Source: Heteronotia binoei (taxonomy: Eukaryota). Taken from it: DNA of 64,000 nt. Below the pieces are notes generated by a model. The model searched no databases, was not told the origin of the DNA, and was given only the letters and a program-made list of their open reading frames with translations. Position numbers and translations under genes: made by a program. Below are positions 6,855 to 62,420 of this stretch, piece after piece (the first letter of the stretch is position 1; each line of letters begins with the position of its first letter). The stretch is from assembly GCF_032191835.1 (NCBI RefSeq), contig NC_083243.1, positions 178,994,001 through 179,058,000 of the forward strand, given 5' to 3'.

Positions 6855-7939
6855 GTAAGTAAGCAAACAGTAGTTGGTTTTAAGCTCTTCCAGAGCAGAA
6901 AGGTCATGGAATTCCATCTCAAAGGGGATGGTGAGAGCAAAGAAGGGCCGGGAGCATGTTCATCATGGCACTGAGGGTTAGTCTATTCAAGACAGCAGCC
7001 TTAGCGTCTTGTCTCACCATTATCTACAACTTGTCTCACCATTATCTAGGAGTGAAAGACGAATGGACGTCAATAAGAGTTTAATCCTCATCAGGCATAA
7101 AAATGAAAGAAAAAAAACCCTATCACCTCCACTGCGTATTTGCTTTAAATTAGTACCCCACCAGCTAGATTAATATGCAGAATGCACAATGGACAGACAA
7201 AACAATTGATGTGGTTGTATGTGGATGAATTTAAGCCCAGTTTTATCTGAAATGGGAAGAGGCTTATAGGATGTCCTTGTTGACAGGTTTTTCTTGACCA
7301 GGGATAGACAAATGTTTCATTCATTTATTAGTTTGTCAGTTTTTTTCCATTTGTCTTCCTATTTGCACACAGCCCTGTAGCTATGATAATACAATTTGTG
7401 TTTTGAAACGTTTTTCTTTTTGGTGACTTCAAATTTTGGCCATCATCACCTGGAACACAAGATGGTCTTTTATTCATTTTGTTTGTGGTTTTTTTCCTGC
7501 GTTAAAATTACATGCAAATTTTATACATTAGCTGTACACATATGGTACAAATAAATGAGATCCTCCTATCAACAGCTGTAGACTGCAAAATGGCCTGTTG
7601 TGCACTACATGGTGCCTTAGTATTCATACATATACACTTACGCTAGAGAGAAGATAGAACCACATCTGGAGAGATTTGACATGTACAGTATTAAAGGGAT
7701 AGGCTGATACATGAAGAATAATCTAAAACTGGTCAAAAGGAGGTATAGAGATTCATTAAATCCATTTATTAACAATTAAGATTACAATGCTAGTAATTCC
7801 TATGAGTCAGAAGTAACATTTAAAAAGGCATTCCCCAAAGGCAAAAGAAGGACAAAACAGGGACAAAGGACCATACAATCAAGACTTCCCTTGCTAGGTA
7901 AGAAATATTAGTGTGTATAGGTAAAGCCACCAAGAATCC

Positions 7940-8672
7940 GGCCTCTATACCGCCGCGCCGCGTCAGCGGCTATAGGCGGGGAGGCCGCCGTTGCTCCCTG
8001 GGAGGAGGGAGAGACGGAGTAGCTTTCCCGGGCATCCGGGATTTGAGGGGGCGGAGCGACAGAGCTATTAAGCCTGGACTCCGCCCCTGAGCACGCACCT
8101 GTTTTGCGGCTCTCGGCCCGCCCACCCGCCCTTCAGCAGTACAGGTTTAACCGGTCGCCTGTTTTTGGGGCCAGGTAGGAATTTTTTCACGCTCACCTGA
8201 TTGGCTGTTGGTGAGGTGTTTTTCGCCTACCTTGTACTGCTTGTTAGTGGGGGATAGTTGGTTAAGTGGATGCAGTAGGAGCAAGGGGTTACGGAAACAC
8301 AGGGGAGCACCCAGGGCACTGCACCTGTTTGGTGCAAGCGATCGGCAGGAGTGGCAGATGGGCTCTACGGCTCAATGTTGCAGAATGCCGATTGTGTGAT
8401 CCCTTCCCACAAGATCGGCTCTTCCTGGGTGATTATGCCAGTGTGGGGTAGGAGGATCCGGCCTGGCTGGCCTGATATGAGCCAAATACGTGGTTCATGT
8501 CGGGGGCAGGGTGGCTCACTCAGATTTGGGCAAGGAGGGGTCATGGGATGACCCCAGGGCTTGTCCGGTTTCTGGTAACCCTTGCCATGCTTGCTTTAGT
8601 TGTTTATTTCAATAAAGGGCCCATTTTTACCAAACTCATGTTGTCAGTCTCTTCTTTCCGACCTTTGGGGGC
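7940..8672 (+). mobile_element. ~730-bp LTR-like element, probable DIRS/Ngaro (tyrosine recombinase) family repeat
   Basis: GC-rich island in AT-rich DNA; homologous to 61042-61796 (CCCGCCCTTC..GCAGTACAGG..GGTCGCCTGTTT..GGTAGGAATTTTT); AATAAA ~45 bp from the end; no TG..CA termini; GGC at both junctions. Confidence 0.6.
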
Positions 8673-9487
8673 AACAAGAAATAAATAGCAGTAGGAAATG
8701 AAATTACTCCACCAACATTACTACTTTACCAAATGTTACTAATACCAACAGTTCTGAATAGATTTTATGCATAACATGTAATGATATAACGGGTAAAATA
8801 TGACTTAGTTTTTTTAGCTAACACATTTTCATCCAAGATAATAGTATGATTACGTGGCACTGGGCATTATACTTTCTAATGTTGTGTGTTTTTTTTTCAA
8901 ATAACTCCACTTTTTTGTTTGGAAATGGAGTAACCTGGATCTGGAAGCCATTCTGAAAAGCTAGATGACACCAAGTGCCTTTTATTAGTATGGCCTTCAT
9001 CATATTTTATAATCTTGGTTGCCAAAGCCCAGTGTCATTCTGAAGTGTATGAACAAACAAGTGAAAGAGGAAGGGAGGACAGGCAGACTTCTCAGCAAGT
9101 GATGCAGGCCAAGTGAGGTAATCTATCTCCCTCAGTTCTGGGAGACAGCAATAACCTGCCATTGACAACGAGATCCTGTATTATTTGAAATATCCCCATG
9201 TTTCACTAGGCAGATGAAATAGGGATGATTGGTTTATTCCTTTGGGCTTCAAGCACACAATAGGAGGGCAATTCTACTATTTCACAAATTAGACATATTT
9301 TCAGCCTTAGTCTGTCTGTTGCCTCAGCTCCAATCCAAGTGCTGAATTTATGGGGGGGGGGGGGGGGGAGATGCCTGCACTTAGCTCTTATGATATAGGA
9401 AAATAAGGATTCTAGGAAATACTTTTGTAAAGAGCTACCTCTCAAAACAGTACTGTTTACTCTCCCCTTCTCATTTTCCTGTTCCAG

Positions 9488-18949: not shown

Positions 18950-19800
18950 TTCAGATCTTTTTTTTTTTTTTTTTTGTATCTTCCAGTCGGTTCACTACTC
19001 TTCCCAATTTGGCGTCATCTGCAAATTTAACGAGTAATCCCTTCACCTCCTCGTCCATATCATTTATAAAAATACTGAAAAGTAGCAGGCCCAAAACTGA
19101 GCCCTGTGGCACCCCACTGGATACCTCCCTCCAATCCGCTGAAAGGCCATTGACAACTACACTTTGGGTGTGGTTCTCCAACCAGTTCCTTATCCACCTA
19201 ACTATCTTCGAGTCCAGTCCGGAGTCCCCCAGTTTACCCAACAGAACATCATGGGGAACCATGCTGAAAGCTTTCCTGAAATCCGGATAAACAGTCTTAA
19301 TGGCATTTCCCCCAATCCAATAAGATTGCCACTTGATCAAAGAAGGAAATGAGGTTGGTTTTGCAGGACCCATTGGAGACAAAATCTGTGCCCTGTGGCA
19401 CCCCACTGGATACCTCCCTCCAATCCGCTGAAAGGCCATTGACAACTACACTTTGGGTGTGGTTCTCCAACCAGTTCCTTATCCACCTAACTATCTTCAA
19501 GTCCAGTCCGGAGTCGCCCAGTTTACCCAACAGAACATCATGGGGAACCGTGCTGAAAGCTTTCCTGAAATCCGGATAAACAGCCTTAATGGCATTTCCC
19601 CCAATCCAATAAGATTGTCACTTGATCAAAGAAGGAAATGAGGTTGGTTTTGCAGGACCCATTGGAGACAAAATCTGTGCTGACTTCCCCGGATCACCTA
19701 ATTGTCCTTCAGATACTCACAGATTGATCCCTTTAAAATCTGCTCCAGTATCGTCTCTGGGACAGAAGTCAGATTGACTGGCCTGTAGTTTCCTGGGCAC
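18950..19800 (-). mobile_element. CR1 LINE RT fragment with a 289-bp tandem duplication
   Basis: ORFs 18951-19445 and 19297-19530 contain PDFRKAF, SGVPQGSVLG and KFADD motifs; repeat units 19101-19389 and 19390-19680. Confidence 0.9.
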
Positions 19801-20186
19801 ATACATATATATTATGGGCTTGAACTTGAGCAACCATGATTTTAATCACTGTTGTTCATCATGATTCCAAAATCCAATAACAAAGCATGCCATATAAAAA
19901 TATATATATATATTAGAAACTGAATCAGAGCAATCATGTCTTGACATTGACTTTGACTTTCTAAAACCCAGTTCTGATGTTACATCCGGGGATACAAGAG
20001 TCTGGCAGCTGTGTATCAGGAGTGCACAGGACTCATGCTCCTTCCAGTACAGGTGGTCACCAAGTTGCCTGAACCAGGGCAATGGGTGCATTTTGCATAC
20101 GTTTACAGGTTGTGAACGTGCAGACCAGAACCTTAGAAAATTCAGCGGTCACTTCTTGTACCAAAGCTGTAGGCATATGTACACAG

Positions 20187-20867
20187 ACCTCGAGGTTGGA
20201 CTACTGTAATGCCCTCTACGTGGGGCTGCCCCTGTGCCGAACCCGGAAGTTGCAGCTAGTGCAGAATGCTGCTGCCTGGCTGCTATTAGGGCTTCCTAGA
20301 TGGGAGCACATCCAGCCGGGGCTCTGGGGACTGCACTGGCTGCCAATAATATACCGAGTTTGGTACAAGGTGCTGGTTATTACCTTTAAAGCCCTATATG
20401 GCCTAGGACCTGCCTACCTTAGGGACCGTCTCTCCCCACATGTTCCCCAGAGAGTGCTGAGATCGAGTTCTCAAAACCTGCTTGCAATCCCTGGGCCAAA
20501 GGAGGCCCTACTTAAGTCGACCAGAGACAGGGCCTTTTCAATCACAGCCCCTTGCTGGTGGAACCAGCTACCGGAAGAGGTGAGGGCCCTGCGGGACCTT
20601 GGGCAGTTCCACAGGGCCTGTAAGACAGTCCTCTTCCGGTTGGCATACAACTGATCGGTACTTGAAAATTTCGAATAGAAGGCTGTAGTATGGTACTTTG
20701 GTAAATGGCTTTGTTTTACTGTTTTTACTGGTTTATTGTTTAAATGTTGTAAATTGTTGTATTTTAAAACTTAATCCTATGTTAGAACTTTTGTGTTGTG
20801 AGCCGCCCTGAGCCGCTTTGGTGGGAAGGGCGGGATATAAACTAAATAAAATGAAATGAAATGAAAT
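20187..20867 (+). mobile_element. L2-clade LINE 3' fragment
   Basis: RLDYCNALYVGLP..LQLVQNAAA..LHWLP..YKVLVITFKAL..RAFSITAP.WWNQLPEEVR; 3' UTR GTGAGCCGCCCTGAG and (TGAAA)n tail. Confidence 0.9.
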
Positions 20868-28186: not shown

Positions 28187-28771
28187 ATTTATTTATTTAT
28201 TTATTTAATGAACTTATATCCCGCCCTTCTCACCGAAGTGTCTCAGGGCGGCTCACAACATAATGATTCATACAATTCCATTTAAAACATTTACAGATAC
28301 AATAAAAGCATAGTTCATAAAACAAGATAAAATAAAGCCAGCGGTCTATAAGAGCATTTTGTTCCATCCAAAGATGTTCCATCCAAAGTATCAGTTAGGT
28401 GTTATAGGCCTGCCGGAAGAGGGCTGTCTTGCAGGCCCTGCGGAACTGCCCTAGGTCCCGCAGGGCCCGCACCTCCTCCGGCAGCTGGTTCCACCAGTAA
28501 GGTGCCGCTGTTGAGAAGGCCCGATCCCTGGTGGATTTTAGGCGGGCCTCCTTTGGCCCAGGGACTACCAGCAGATTTTGTGAGCCGGAACGTAGTACTC
28601 TCTGGGGAACGTGTGGGGAGAGACGGTCCCTAAGGTAGGCAGGTCCTAGGCCATACAGGGCTTTAAAGGTAATGACCAACACCTTGTACTGGACTCGGAA
28701 TGTTACTGGCAGCCAGTGCAGATCCCGGAGCCCCGGCCGAATGTGCTCCCATCTTGGGAGCCCTAATAGCA
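28187..28771 (-). mobile_element. L2-clade LINE 3' fragment
   Basis: ORF 28395-28772 very similar to 20187-20654; (TAAA)n tail. Confidence 0.9.
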
Positions 28772-30076
28772 CTCAGGTCAAAGTTAAATGTAGAAATTCA
28801 GTGTTTGAGTTTAAGGAAGCAAATGATATTTAACATTCCAAGCTGAATTTTGCTTTTGGTATGGAATTCAGCAGGGGGTGGGCATTGTTTGTATGTTAGA
28901 GACAGTTGAAAAAGACTGAGGGTGGTCGCATCTTTGGTGGCAAGATCATCAGACAGAAATAATGGCTAATTATGGAACAAAATAGCACTGCTCCAAGTTA
29001 AAAAACTCTTTTAATTTCTCACATGTCCAGTTTGGAAATTCTCATGCAAAAATCAAAAATTCAGAAACTGAAGCGCCACCTTGATTTTAAATTTGTCCTC
29101 AAACATGGCAAATTTCATTTCTCTCATGATACAAGTTTAAAGCCTACGTACAGCCAGGTTGCTTGGCACTGCATTTTCGATCACTTTGTTTTTTTAGCAG
29201 CTCACCTCCATGCTGAATGGTCAGGGGTTTGGCGAAAAGTATCGAATATTTGCAGAGAACCACTGGTAACTTGTGGAGAAATTTAAAATGGCCTCCATAT
29301 GGAGACTTTGGACATGTTAACCTAAACCAGCTCATAGTTATCCCTCCGACTGTCGAAGCGAAAAACGAACTATTTTTCATTCACAAGAACGAGCAGCTTT
29401 TTGCAAACTAGATGTCCCAGTGTGCTGTGCCCATAACTTGAGATAAGGCTGATAATCTAGGAAGAAACATGCTGCAGGATTCTGGCTCAGTCAGAAAGGA
29501 AAAATCAAATAAACTGCCTAAGATAGTTTGATTCTGTAGATGCAGTTCTCCAGATGATCCATCAAAGGATTTGGTGAATGACACTCAGAACAAGAGGAAG
29601 GTGTTTCCACACAATCGTAACACTGGAGATTTCACAAGATCCCAGAGCTGCTGTTACTACACTTCCACATAATCTTTATTACATTCTCAGCTTTACAGAA
29701 CCCATGCTTGGAAAACTCAGCCCATTAGAAAAGAAAAAACATTTTTATGGGGGGGAGGGGAGAGGAGACTCATTTTTATTACATTACAGATTCTACCTAT
29801 ATCACATTCTCTGTCTTCCTGATGACCTAGTGCATTTGCCCTATGATCCTGAATTGCAGAAATTCCATGGCCTAGTCCCACCCACACACCCCATGTCTGA
29901 ATCTGAAAATGTCAGAGGACCTTAGTAAATGCCTCAGTGCATTTTTTCCTTTGATTTGAGGGATCATGGAAGTCACCCTTGGAAAACATTGAGGGGGGGA
30001 AAAAAACCTCCACAGACCCCTGGCAAACACGGCAGTGGAGAAGGTGAACTCAGGATGGGAGATGGGCACTCAGTGC

Positions 30077-36250: not shown

Positions 36251-36269
36251 TGTATACACCAAAACCTAC

Positions 36270-36665
36270 TACGAATCCCTGGACCAAGAGAGGCCAGATT
36301 GAAAGCAACAAGGGAGCAGGCCTTATCCCCAATGGCTCCCAAAGGGTGGAACCAACTACCAGAGGAGGTGCAAGCCCTGCAAGACCTAAATCAATTCCGC
36401 AGGGCTTGCAAAACCACCGTCTGTCAACTCGCATTTCAGATGGCACCCGGAGATGACACCTAGCCATCCTATACACATTCTGAACTGTGGCACTTTAATT
36501 TATACTTGATAAAATTTTAATTGTTATTTAACTTAATCTGAATTGTATTTAACTATTTTAATTTTTTTTAATGTATTGATGGATTTTAGTGTAATCATGG
36601 TGTAAACCATGTCATGTGTGAGCCGCCCTGAGCCCGCTTCAGCGGGGGAGGGCGGGATATAAGAA
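36270..36665 (+). mobile_element. L2 3' fragment inserted in the CR1 3' UTR microsatellite
   Basis: PGPREARLKATREQA..WNQLPEEVQALQDL; GTGAGCCGCCCTGAGCCC terminus; the CR1 UTR resumes at ~36690. Confidence 0.8.
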
Positions 36666-49150: not shown

Positions 49151-50227
49151 TGCTTAATTTCTGGGAAGACATGGTACCAAATTTAGTGCATTTGCGAAGG
49201 CTTTTCACTGGTGCAGTGAATCCAAAGCGCTAAGGAAAATTTTACTGCACAGCTCAGCTGCATAGATCTAGATTTATACATTTTCTGAGGTTGGGAGAAT
49301 TTGCACGTGGTTGTCTTGGCATTGCACTGGTCTGCTTTGAACTTATCTCCGTCTCGTGCTTATTGGCTGGTACCATTCTTGGTTAATCTCTGATAGATCC
49401 AGTCACTTTCTGGGTACGTACACATGTTCGGGATTCGACCTTGCCCCAAATACAAGTGGGTTTTGCGACCAATTAAAATCTTCGTTAGGAATGCTGGGCA
49501 AACACAGATACCAATCGTGTAGCCATGCATCCCCAAAGCATTACCCATTTTATAACAAAGGAAGCTGACATCCCACATCAGACATGCCGGGACAGTGAAG
49601 CAGCTGCTTCAGTATAAAACAAGTGGTAACATCTGTAGGAAGGAGCCATGTGGGTTGGTTGGCTGACATGGATCATGCCCACATCAATGTTCCCTCCACC
49701 CTGGTTGCCAGCAGTGCTAGCGTGGGTGGGAAGGAACCACGACACTTTCCCGATAGCTGCGGGCTCCTTAACGATGTGTTAGAAACTCTGCGGCTTGAAA
49801 CTGTAATACTATATCCTAACGTTGAAACTGATCAGGCCCAGCAAACTTCCTGGGCCTGCACTGCCCAGTCTTCAGAGACCTCTCCTGGGCAAAAGGGAAC
49901 AGGGCTTACAGCATCATCCCCTATGAGCGGCATGCTATATAAAACCTCTAGCTTGGTCAGGCCTGGCATCGATTCCAGGAGGCTGTTCTGCTCTCGTCGG
50001 CTCAACAGAACGACGACGTTTTGCCTGCTGAACTTTTGTCCAGCTATAGCCTCCAGTGAAAGCCTCCATTTCTGGCAGCTGACCTCAGAGAACCTGTAGA
50101 GAAGAACATGAGCTCCAGATCTGTTCATAACCCTTGGCCTGGTCTGACAGGTGCTTATCAGACTGACACTGAGGCTGAGCCATGTAGACTCAGGGATGCG
50201 CAATCACCCGGTGGTTGTTTGCATCAT

Positions 50228-51632
50228 GCATTGAGGAAGACTCAGCATGGGTTCTGTAAGGGAAGGTCTTGCCTCACTAACCTGTTACAGTTCTTTGAGG
50301 GGATGAACAAACATGTGGACAAAGAGGACCCAATAGATGTTGTTTACCTTGACTTCCAGAAAGCTTTTGATAAAGTTCCTCATCAAAGGCTCCTTAGTAA
50401 GCTTGAGAGTCATGGAGTAAAAGGACAGGTCCTCTTGTGAATCAAAAACTGGCTAATTAATAGGAAGCAGAGAGTGAGTATAAATAGGCAGTCTTCACAG
50501 TGGAGGACGGTAAGCAGTGGGGTGCTGCAGGGCTCCGTATTGGGTCCCATGCTCTTTAACTTGTTCATTAATGATCTGGAGTTGGGAGTAAGCAGTGAAG
50601 TGGGCAAGTTTGCAGATGACACTAAAATGTTCAGGGTGGTGAGAACCAGAGAGGATTGTGAGGAACTCCAAAGGGATCTGTTGAGGCTGGGTGAGTGGGC
50701 ATCAATGTGGCAGATGAGGTTCAATGTGGCCAAGTGCAAAGTAATGCACATTGGGGCCAAGAATCCCAGCTACAAATACAAGTCGATGGGTTGTGAACTG
50801 GCAGAGACTGACCAAGAGAGAGATCTTGGGGTCGTGGTAGATAACTCAATGAAAATGTCAAGACAGTGTGCGATTGCAATAAAAAAGGCCAATGCCATGC
50901 TGGGAATTATTAGGAAGGGAACTGAAAACAAATCAGCCAGTATCATAATGACCCTGTATAAATTGATGGTGCGGTCTCATTTGGAATACTGTGTGCAATT
51001 CTGGTCACTGCACCTCAAAAAGGATATTATAGCACTGGAAGAAGTCCAGAAAAGGGCAACTAGAATGATTAAAGGTTTGGAACACTTTCCCTATGAAGAA
51101 AGGTTAAAACGCTTGGGGCTCTTTAGCTTGGAGAAACGTCGACTGCGGGGTGACATGATAGAGGTTTACAAGATTATGCATGGGATGAAGAAAGTAGAGA
51201 AAGAAGTACTTTTCTCCCTTTCTCACAATACAAGAACTCGTGGGCATTCAATGAAATTGCTGAGCAGTCAGGTTAAAACTGATAAAAGGAAGTACTTCTT
51301 CACCCAAAAGGCGATTAACATATGGAATTCACTGCCACAGGAGGTGGTGGTGGCTACAAGCATAGCCAGGTGGGTGCACTTCTGGCTCAGGCCCCAGATT
51401 TACTTGCCTTTTAAATCCAGGGGTGGGAGGGGATTGGATAAAATATGGAGCAGAGGTCCATCAGTGGCTATTAGCCACAGTGTGTATATATATATATGTG
51501 TGTGTGTGTGTGTTTGTGTTTGTGTATACATATGTATGTATGTACACACGCACATATATTGGCCACTGTGTGACACAGAGTGTTGGACTGGATGGGCCAT
51601 TGGCCTGATCCAACATGGCTTCTCTTATGTTC
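50228..51632 (+). pseudogene. 5'-truncated CR1 LINE, ORF2 reverse transcriptase domain with one in-frame stop
   Basis: TQHGFCKGRSCLTNLL..YLDFQKAFDKVPH (TGA at 50438-50440) ..SGVLQGSVLGP..KFADDTK..RFNVAKCKVMHIG..LEKRRLRGD; standard CR1 3' UTR. Confidence 0.95.
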
Positions 51633-52524
51633 ATTCATGTAATGATTACAAGAGCCAAACATTTAACACATTGTTCATCTACATTCAAACATCTCCAGTG
51701 TGTCCAGTTAAATTTTTTAAAAAATGACTAAACCTCTAATTACATTTCACTTTGTCACAATCAGCACCCCCCTGAATCTGCCATCATCCCACTTAAGAAG
51801 GTGCATTCTTGGAAGGAAAAAATACTTGACATTTTTTGTGTTCAGCATCTCTGGCTGGATTCAGATGGGCAGCTCATGGTGGTGGCCTCTTGGCTTTAAA
51901 AAAAAAACTGGCACAGTCTGAGATTCTTGCTGCAAGCAGACAGCTCACACCTGGCTGCTGAGAGAGGCAGGGCTGCACGCAACCAGAGGAGCGGCCACAT
52001 TGCTTGTGTGCTTGCAAGGCTCTTGCATGGCACACACCAGCTATTCGGATGGCCCGGAAATGCACCATGCAAGCGCTTCAGCAGTTTGCCGTCAGGAGGT
52101 ACCTGGTGGCTTTTTGAAGTGGAGTTGAGGCAGTGGGAGATGAGGCGGGTGTACTTCTGGCTCAGGGCCCAGATGTGCACATGTCAACTTGCCTTTTAAA
52201 TCCAGGGGTGGGAGTGGATGTGTTCGGGCCAAATTGCCCATCTGAATGCATCCTCTGGGTGCTTTCTGGTAATGCTACTGGCAATCATCCATTCATTCAT
52301 TTATTGTTAATTTACGTTGAACAAAGCAGGAGTCAAGTGGCACCTTTAAGACCAACCCATTTTTTATTTAGAACGTCAGCTTTCGTGTGCTCCTCGTGTT
52401 CTCTCCAAAGGGAACCAAAGCGGCTTACAGAAGAAACAAACTATCAAATACACAACAAAACAACAAACTGCATCATGGGCTGGTCCTGAATTCCTTTGCT
52501 AACTCACCCAAAGGCATGGGCTGC

Positions 52525-60584: not shown

Positions 60585-61930
60585 TATTTGATTTATTGAT
60601 GGGATTTATATCCTGCCCATCCTGCCAAGGCAGGCTCAGGGTGGGTAACAACATAAGAAAATATACATTAATTCATTAAAATCCTAAAATCTTCAGATCA
60701 ATAAATTACAACTCACAACATTAATTAAACATAAGATGGCTATATTCTATGAATCTGCTCCAGGCATGCTCCAGGCATGTTGATAATAGCTAATATCATA
60801 GGCATTCCATACAATGAACAATAAAAGGTAGGTCTGACCAATATCCAGTCACTATACATCATACAGTAGGAGGGGTGGATTGAATCAGATGTCTGAATAT
60901 CATTGGAAGGCCTTGTGGAAGAGCCCCATCTTACAGGTCCTGTGGAACTGCAATAGATTCTGTAGAGCCCTGATTTCCATGAGGAGCTCATTCAACCATG
61001 CAGGTGCCAGAGCCGAAAAGACTCTGGCCCTAGTAGAAATTGCCCCCCCCCCAGGCGGAATAACGAGGCAGACACAAAGTTGGGTTAAAGGGCCACTTTA
61101 TTAACTTAACGGCAAGGGCAAAACATGGGGACAGGTCAAGCCAGGGGTCAACCGCGACCACCTCCTTGACCCGAAACTGGGCGAGCCCCCTAAGCCCCGG
61201 GTGTGAGCCAACCAAAACGGCTCAGACCCGGCCGGCCCGGCAACTTGATCACCGCTCACCTGAGCTCCGCCATCCCCACAGACAGCAGCCTGGGATGCGG
61301 ACACTCAGCACTTGCCGGGATCCTACAGACTCCCTGGAGCCAACCTTGGGCCATACAGTTTGCGGTTCCCCAGGAGAGTCATGCACCAAATGGCGCGAAG
61401 CTACGGGAGCTCACCAATCCCCAAAACATAATGCCAACCACAAACTGCCAGTGACCAACCTACATAACGGCACCACCTTTCAAAATGCCAACACCAACAT
61501 CAGCAGTACAGGGTAGGCAAAAACACCCCCGAACCAGGCCAATCGTCCGAGGGCCAAAAATTCCTACCCGGCCCCTATAAACAGGCGACCAGCCTCTGCC
61601 TGTACTGCTTGAAGGGCGGGCGGGCCGAGAGCGAATTTCGACTGCGCACTAGGGGGCGGGGGCAGCCTTTTAAGGCTGCCTCAGCCCCTTCCCTCCAGGG
61701 ATATCCCATTGCCTCTCATCCGCGCGGGGAGGCAATGGGCGGCCCCCAGCCTCAGCAGTCAATGGACTGCTCGGCCGGGAAGGGGCCGAACTAGCCGGAC
61801 ATATTTCGGGCCAGGGACTACCAGTTAACATTGATCAGCTATCTTAAAGCTTTTCAAGAGACATATGGGGAGAGGCAGTCCCATAGGTATGTTGGCCTGG
61901 TGTCCTGTAGGTATGTGGCCAATAGCCAAT
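60585..61930 (-). mobile_element. Older L2 3' fragment interrupted by the 61042-61796 insertion
   Basis: (TAAA)n-like tail, GGCTCAGGGTGGG end, and GGGCCAGGGACTACCAG homologous to the L2 at 28187-28771. Confidence 0.7.
61042..61796 (-). mobile_element. ~755-bp LTR-like element, probable DIRS/Ngaro family repeat
   Basis: Homologous to 7940-8672; GCC at both junctions on the plus strand; removing it restores continuous L2 sequence (GAAATTGCCGGACAT). Confidence 0.65.
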
Positions 61931-62420
61931 GTAGGGTATATGTGGTGTTTTGGCTCTCCCTAAGTATGGCCTGCTTAGGGCAAGGAGGGATTCAGTTTTG
62001 CCACCCTTCGTCACCTCACCTCCTCCTCCAAGGATGCCTTCCTTCTCATTAACCTTTTGGGTCTGCTTCCAGTGCTTGCACCTGAGTCCCTTGGTGATGC
62101 CTGTTGGTGGGTGATGTTGATTCTTTGTTCTTCCAGGTCTGCATCCCTCATTTCCTTGAGCACATGCTTTATTTCTCCCCTGTTGTTTGTCAACCAACTC
62201 CCAGGCGTTCTAATGAGGCACCAGAGTCCAACGAGCCCAAAGTGTCAGGCCGGACAGAGTAGTGAAGGTAAGTGTCATTTGCAGCCACACAAATTGGCAG
62301 TAGGCTCGTCAAGGGGGATTCTTGGACTTCTACCCCATATTCCTTTCCAAATCAGCTCTTGGTCAGAACTAATGTTGTTTTATATTTTTCATTTACACAT
62401 ACCTTTCTCACCAATGTAAA

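Follow-up and report, generated by a model that had tools for sequence, protein, structure and literature searches.

What kind of mobile element leaves a unit of LTR size that begins and ends with the same three bases, and does such an element select its target by a fixed sequence? The question is raised by two related units in the window, which is the whole 64,000-nt stretch of Heteronotia binoei DNA that was analysed. The units, and the junctions of the first, are located as follows.

7940-8672, plus strand: copy 1, an LTR-like unit of 733 bp including both GGC triplets, read here as a probable solo A-B unit of the Ngaro type.
7937-7942, plus strand: TCC and then GGC, the left junction of copy 1 by direct reading, with TCC counted as flank in the model of the preliminary description.
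8670-8674, plus strand: GGC and then AA, the right junction of copy 1 by direct reading.
61042-61796, minus strand: copy 2, a unit of 755 bp including both GGC triplets, within the tail of an L2 ORF2.

Read directly, the junctions of copy 1 are AAGAATCC-GGC-CTCTAT ... CTTTGGG-GGC-AACAAG, with GGC at 7940-7942 and 8670-8672. Those of copy 2, on the minus strand, are ATATGTCC-GGC-TAGTTC ... GGGGGGG-GGC-AATTTC, with GGC at 61796-61794 and 61044-61042. The strings that the preliminary description had given (GAATCC-GGC and GGG-GGC-AACAAG for one copy, ATGTCC-GGC and GGG-GGC-AATTTC for the other) are exact on direct reading. The repeat is GGC alone, as also described there: it is exactly three bases long, and on either side of it the neighbouring bases of the left and right junctions differ in both copies.

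The copies had been described as related and strongly diverged, and alignment bears this out. They are homologous over their full length, with about 57% identity over aligned columns in a global alignment, and the top local block found by blastn is 147 bp at 77.5%. TCCGGC marks the left limit of the sequence common to both and GGGGGCAA the right limit; the outer flanks are unrelated. Searches with blastn and nhmmer (--max) found no third copy or fragment of the unit within the 64,000-nt window. The observed to expected ratio of CpG is 0.60 in copy 1 and 0.59 in copy 2, versus 0.28 for the whole window. Ratios near 0.6 in both units, set against that of the window, suggest that the differences between the copies probably arose for the most part as the sublineages diverged, rather than by decay of the inserted copies.

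The extreme ends of the units also differ. At its 5' end (61785-61796, minus strand) copy 2 has nine bases more than copy 1, reading GGC-TAGTTC-GGC-CCC versus GGC-CTC, and GTCCGGC, formed by the flank and GGC, is followed there by the near-repeat GTTCGGC. The nine extra bases may be a sublineage-specific end, filler, or a duplication of the junction. The run of G that precedes the 3' GGC comprises three residues in copy 1 (TTTGGG, 8664-8669) versus eight in copy 2 (61045-61052), and this difference in length suggests slippage or non-templated addition at the element end. Inside copy 1, the 12-mer AGGATCCGGCCT (8453-8464) matches the left junction of the same copy, AGAATCCGGCCT (7933-7944), at 11 of 12 positions. 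It was considered as a meaningful junction-like site and rejected as a chance match; by our own estimate about 0.7 such matches are expected, and the 12-mer is not kept in copy 2.

Despite the divergence of the copies, their layout is common. A TATA-like box, a hairpin and an AATAAA follow one another in both, at the same alignment columns. The hairpin is treated at the end of the text; the other signals are these.

8066-8072, plus strand: TATA-like box TATTAAG of copy 1, 126 nt from the 5' end, aligned to TTAAAAG of copy 2.
61667-61673, minus strand: TTAAAAG, the TATA-like box of copy 2, which lies 123 nt from the 5' end.
8611-8616, plus strand: poly(A) signal AATAAA of copy 1, 56 nt ahead of the 3' end, aligned to AATAAA of copy 2.
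61097-61102, minus strand: AATAAA of copy 2, 55 nt ahead of the 3' end.

The TATA-like boxes are putative promoters, and the strongly conserved block GCTCTCGGCCCGCCC lies 3' of the box in both copies. From the TATA-like box to the poly(A) signal the spacing is about 540 nt, which is long for the R region of an LTR and atypical. Neither unit has terminal inverted repeats or a conserved ORF. Ten spurious ORFs of the two units have no exact match in protein collections, and a word search of such collections gave no match for the antisense ORF of 116 aa in copy 2. Scans of metagenome, viral and prokaryote-genome collections, in which lizard DNA is not to be expected, gave no match to short conserved motifs of the element. 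Rfam finds no hammerhead in either unit, which argues that the units are neither retrozymes nor Penelope LTRs.

Which bases at the junctions belong to the element and which to the host can be decided best at copy 2. This copy had been said to interrupt an L2, and its flanks do align to three relatives in the window.

61797-61960, minus strand: L2 host flank 5' of copy 2, ending in ATATGTCC, nhmmer E = 2.6e-41 against an L2-tail profile.
60881-61041, minus strand: L2 host flank 3' of copy 2, starting with AATTTCTACTAGGG, nhmmer E = 1e-46 against the same profile.
20355-20671, plus strand: L2 relative of the host of copy 2, from flank alignment and nhmmer.
28382-28699, minus strand: second such relative.
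36259-36439, plus strand: third such relative.

The profile was built from the flanks of copy 2 and two relatives. Two of the three relatives translate to a typical C-terminal tail of L2 ORF2, ...LLxxPGPKEAxLKSTRDRAFS...WWNQLPEEVR.... The L2-type ORF2 tails of these relatives, considered as open sequence, extend over 20082-20654 (plus strand), 28395-28772 (minus strand) and 36259-36439 (plus strand); open frames of 190 and 125 aa contain ...LYGLGPAYLRDRLSPH...WWNQLPEEVR....

In each of the three relatives, 22 nt separate the anchors CCCTGGNCC and ACNAGGG. When the site of copy 2 is rejoined with a single GGC, as in the preliminary description, 21 nt lie between the anchors; if TCC and AA are assigned to the element the distance is 13 nt, and if both GGC triplets are assigned to the host it is 24 nt. 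In the alignment, TCCGGC-AA of copy 2 stands opposite CCCGCC-T-AA of the nearest relative. Comparison with the relatives thus places TCC and AA at copy 2 among the host bases. With TCC and AA in the host the site closes to 21-22 nt versus 22 nt in the relatives, so that copy 2 has neither a 4-6 bp duplication nor a sizeable deletion.

The L2 reading frame allows one further refinement. If the host is read as CGG CTA ATT (R-L-I versus R-L-K in the relatives), that is as TCCGGC-T-AA, the distance is 22 nt and the frame is kept. The frame therefore suggests a host site with one T beyond that first described, and the T that follows the left GGC would then be a host base. In that case either the element starts AGTTCGG and shares no base with its target, or the right junction has lost one T. 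The empty site of copy 2 would accordingly be TCCGGCAA or TCCGGCTAA. The claim that both empty sites read TCCGGCAA is right for copy 2 to within one T, the rejoined site being 21 nt versus 22 nt in the relatives. No sequence related to the flanks of copy 1 was found elsewhere in the window.

The two units are probably A-B terminal-repeat units of Ngaro-type tyrosine-recombinase retrotransposons of the DIRS order. They would represent two diverged sublineages, each in the form of a solo A-B unit or of a very short non-autonomous element. Each copy has GGC at its two ends, and the repeat does not extend beyond this triplet. The units combine absence of a TSD with a short identical sequence at both ends, subject to an ambiguity of one nucleotide at copy 2 and to a rival repeat, CAAGAA, at copy 1. 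In layout the units agree with an A part joined to a B part: what resembles a promoter lies within the first third, a poly(A) signal comes near the end, and the spacing of about 540 nt between them is as expected of such a composite.

In the published model for the DIRS order, recombination takes place between a 3-bp sequence at the circle junction and the same triplet in the genome, and leaves no TSD (PMC3266345; PMC7192593). The elements start and end with one trinucleotide, which corresponds to the circle junction (PMC3266345; PMC7192593; PMC9210276); in Xenopus these termini are TTT (PMC9210276). That a shared crossover core without a TSD is what a tyrosine recombinase would leave, as the preliminary description had argued, agrees with this model. 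For Ngaro, A-B repeats that stand alone have been described in Cafeteria burkhardae and compared to solo LTRs (PMC8547959), and the LTR-like layout kept in both copies likewise favours the reading as solo forms that had been put forward. The present units resemble those of Cafeteria in their LTR-like size, in a promoter-like 5' part and a 3' part with a poly(A) signal, and in the lack of an integrase-type duplication at copy 2 (PMC8547959). They differ from Ngaro as described in that neither an A1...B1A2B2 parent nor a recombinase gene is seen in the window. Both the 3-bp crossover signature and solo A-B units are thus already known.

Other members of the group and its neighbours compare less well. 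Like DIRS1-like elements, the units start and end with one trinucleotide, one copy of which is presumed to derive from the target, and have no TSD. DIRS1-like elements carry terminal repeats in inverted orientation together with an internal complementary region, whereas the units lack inverted termini and have a direct layout from the promoter-like part to the poly(A) signal. The triplets of DIRS1-like elements are mostly NTT (ATT, GTT, TTT) in contrast to the GC-rich GGC found here, and a GC-rich motif is reported for only one of 28 annotated DIRS1-like elements (AmDIRS1). Cryptons, which are tyrosine-recombinase DNA transposons, have no LTR-like layout of promoter and poly(A) signal, and nothing points to a Crypton. 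Solo LTRs of ERVs and LTR retrotransposons are similar in size, in the U3-R-U5-like order of signals and in a likely origin by recombination between repeats; they differ from the units, which lack TG..CA ends as well as a consistent 4-6 bp TSD.

We infer a link to a recombinase, a split-repeat parent and a circular intermediate. The full element would have the structure A1-genes-B1-A2-B2. Its RNA would start 3' of the TATA-like box in A and end 3' of AATAAA in B, and it would lack both outer ends, of about 150 nt (5') and about 35 nt (3'). The internal B1-A2 junction, which in the split-repeat design serves to supply just such ends, would make good the loss, and the product would be a circular DNA with the junction ...GGG-GGC-(A start). 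The recombinase of the element would then exchange strands between the GGC of the circle and a genomic GGC. Recombination between A1 and A2 would delete the coding part and leave a solo A-B unit, the analogue of a solo LTR; alternatively, the units may have originated as very short non-autonomous derivatives.

Several points weigh against the Ngaro-type reading. The window contains no internal part of such an element, no recombinase, no Ngaro RT/RNase H and no A1...B1A2B2 arrangement. Pfam scans of 20 ORFs and searches of PDB and the protein atlas found no Ngaro coding part in the window and returned only RTs of the LINE type. Two copies are at hand. The published trinucleotide rule concerns DIRS1-like elements, and for Ngaro none is stated in the open-access texts consulted. 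If copy 2 is split into the host GGCT / AATTTC and an element AGTTCGG...GGGGGC, a shared triplet is not needed, and the L2 frame is fitted better by one base. The CAAGAA repeat of copy 1, finally, abuts exactly the sequence common to both copies (TCCGGC...GGCAA), which the recombinase model does not predict.

The RT ORFs of the window are of the LINE type only. One, at 50108-51727 on the plus strand, has a FADD box and a CR1/L2-like tail (...NIWNSLPQEVV...), contains one stop and runs into a (GT)n microsatellite; it has no match in PDB or the protein atlas beyond Pfam RVT_1. A LINE-type RT fragment at 18951-19445 on the minus strand is recognized by Pfam RVT_1, and its best PDB matches are the RTs of a group II intron, R2 and LINE-1.

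The repeat that flanks copy 1 provides a different division of the same junctions.

7931-7936, plus strand: CAAGAA, the left member of what may be a 6-bp direct repeat flanking copy 1; its right member is at 8675-8680.

With this repeat, copy 1 can be read as TCCGGCC...GGGGGCAA, a 738-bp element at 7937-8674 with a 6-bp duplication. The element would then be TCCGGC...GGGGGCAA, with TCC and AA its own, and a staggered cut would duplicate 6 bp; copy 2 would have entered the L2 irregularly, for example as linear DNA captured at a break by microhomology (TCCGGC at the left, AA at the right) and with no duplication. Such a history would explain the identical TCC and AA with no target specificity, and the CAAGAA repeats do lie exactly at the limits of the common sequence. 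Of the 1696 GGC sites in the window, only 2 have a 6-bp repeat at those exact offsets, and 2.2% have one at any offset from 0 to 5. Copy 2 stands against it. About 9 nt of L2 would be lacking there (13 versus 22 nt between the anchors), and the ends of the element would have to mimic the lost L2 bases at six of eight positions, for which the chance by our own estimate is about 0.004 at a fixed register. Moreover, copy 2 has no flanking repeat (ATATG versus TTTCT), and ends of the type TC...AA match no known integrase-type LTR element. We regard this history as improbable. The shared NNN-GGC-NN context and the CAAGAA repeat are coincidences of the same order, and it is copy 2, with no duplication and with both a loss of about 9 nt and mimicry to be assumed, that tips the balance; TCC and AA are therefore kept as flank and CAAGAA as coincidence, without certainty. 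Less improbable, if still unlikely, is a recombinase-type element that crosses over at GGC, needs only this triplet, and has TCC and AA beside it by coincidence. The published rule for the order is a 3-bp match only, and the target of copy 2 may be TCCGGC-T-AA. Measured on the 1696 GGC sites of the window, the chance that two random sites share the NNN-GGC-NN context is p = 0.002 for the fixed split of three and two bases and 0.008 for any split of at least five extra bases, values that are not negligible for a pair (n = 2) picked by eye from a genome scan. Against pure coincidence, the five extra positions are identical in the same orientation to the element at two independent insertions of two diverged sublineages, and tyrosine recombinases commonly read the bases that flank the crossover.

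The least credible alternative, to which we give very little weight, takes the units for solo LTRs left by a conventional LTR retrotransposon of the integrase type, or by an ERV, and supposes their boundaries to have been placed a few bases off. The LTR-like layout, with its TATA-like box, AATAAA and U5-like tail, is as expected for such units, and copy 2 can be read as TG TCCGGC...GGGGGG CA. TG..CA termini can be forced in this way on copy 2 only; copy 1 has AA in place of TG and starts AATCCGGC or GGCC. If its limits are set at TG..CA, copy 2 lacks a duplication (AAATA versus ATTTC) and leaves the L2 short by about 10 nt, while copy 1 offers at best a match of four in five bases (CCAAG versus ACAAG), and the distance from TATA-like box to poly(A) signal is atypical here too. 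No 4-6 bp TSD is present at any nearby boundary of copy 2, whereas copy 1 has CAAGAA on both sides if its ends are TCC...AA. The earlier statement that the elements lack TG..CA ends and a 4-6 bp TSD is thus upheld for copy 1 as regards the ends and for copy 2 as regards the duplication, and is to be qualified by the possible 6-bp repeat of copy 1 and by the ends that copy 2 can be made to show.

If the units are of the Ngaro type, their target may extend beyond the crossover triplet. An extended preference for TCC-GGC-(T)AA is possible, with the chances roughly even. The stronger proposal is of a squamate Ngaro lineage that integrates sequence-specifically, with a recombinase that would recognize about 8 bp on and around the 3-bp crossover at GGC, TCC-GGC-(T)AA, the orientation being fixed and the specificity retained by two sublineages whose units are as diverged as those described here; this we put forward tentatively, as somewhat less probable than its negation. 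A fixed 8-bp target TCCGGCAA is unproven, there being two sites, of which one is ambiguous by one base and the other open to the 6-bp TSD reading. Unoccupied TCCGGCAA sites are absent from the window, in which only about 0.6 are expected by our own estimate.

The preliminary description had suggested that the target motif may be undescribed. This applies to one part of it: a short core shared at the crossover is itself what textbooks give as the mark of the order, whereas a fixed 8-bp target for Ngaro has to our knowledge not been described and is not stated in the open-access texts consulted. The target choice of tyrosine-recombinase retrotransposons is known only from sequence patterns, and the published evidence is the 3-bp match of DIRS1-like elements. 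If the proposal is true, an extended target motif would for the first time be defined for a retrotransposon of the Ngaro type. Confirmation of an oriented 8-bp target in many copies would provide a concrete, testable recombination site for the recombinase of a vertebrate retroelement, and a simple annotation signature for units that repeat maskers tend to leave unclassified. At present the two copies are an ordinary pair of Ngaro-type terminal units with the expected signature.

Both units also contain a branched hairpin, about 107 nt long, in which two U runs face each other.

8135-8241, plus strand: ENE-like branched hairpin of copy 1, predicted MFE -45.9 kcal/mol, z = -3.06.
61502-61609, minus strand: ENE-like branched hairpin of copy 2, predicted MFE -54.5 kcal/mol, z = -3.57.

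The z-scores were computed against dinucleotide shuffles. The hairpin lies about 70 nt 3' of the TATA-like box and about 370 nt 5' of AATAAA. An ENE is a poly(A)-binding triple-helix RNA element whose stem is interrupted by two facing U-rich strands, and the shape predicted for the hairpin is ENE-like. Rfam returned no family and no curated ENE at cut-offs of E<=1 for copy 1 and E<=10 for copy 2. The predicted fold is alike in both copies. Its long lower stem pairs AGCAGTACAGG with CCTTGTACTGCT in copy 1 or with CCCTGTACTGCT in copy 2, followed by GGTAGG with CCTACC, and the facing loops are predicted to be U6/U5 in both. The core pattern matches only the two copies in the window, where 0.05 matches are expected by chance. 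Three compensatory pairs distinguish the apical stems of the two copies, and the apical loop, GATTGGC, is invariant and equals a reversed CCAAT box.
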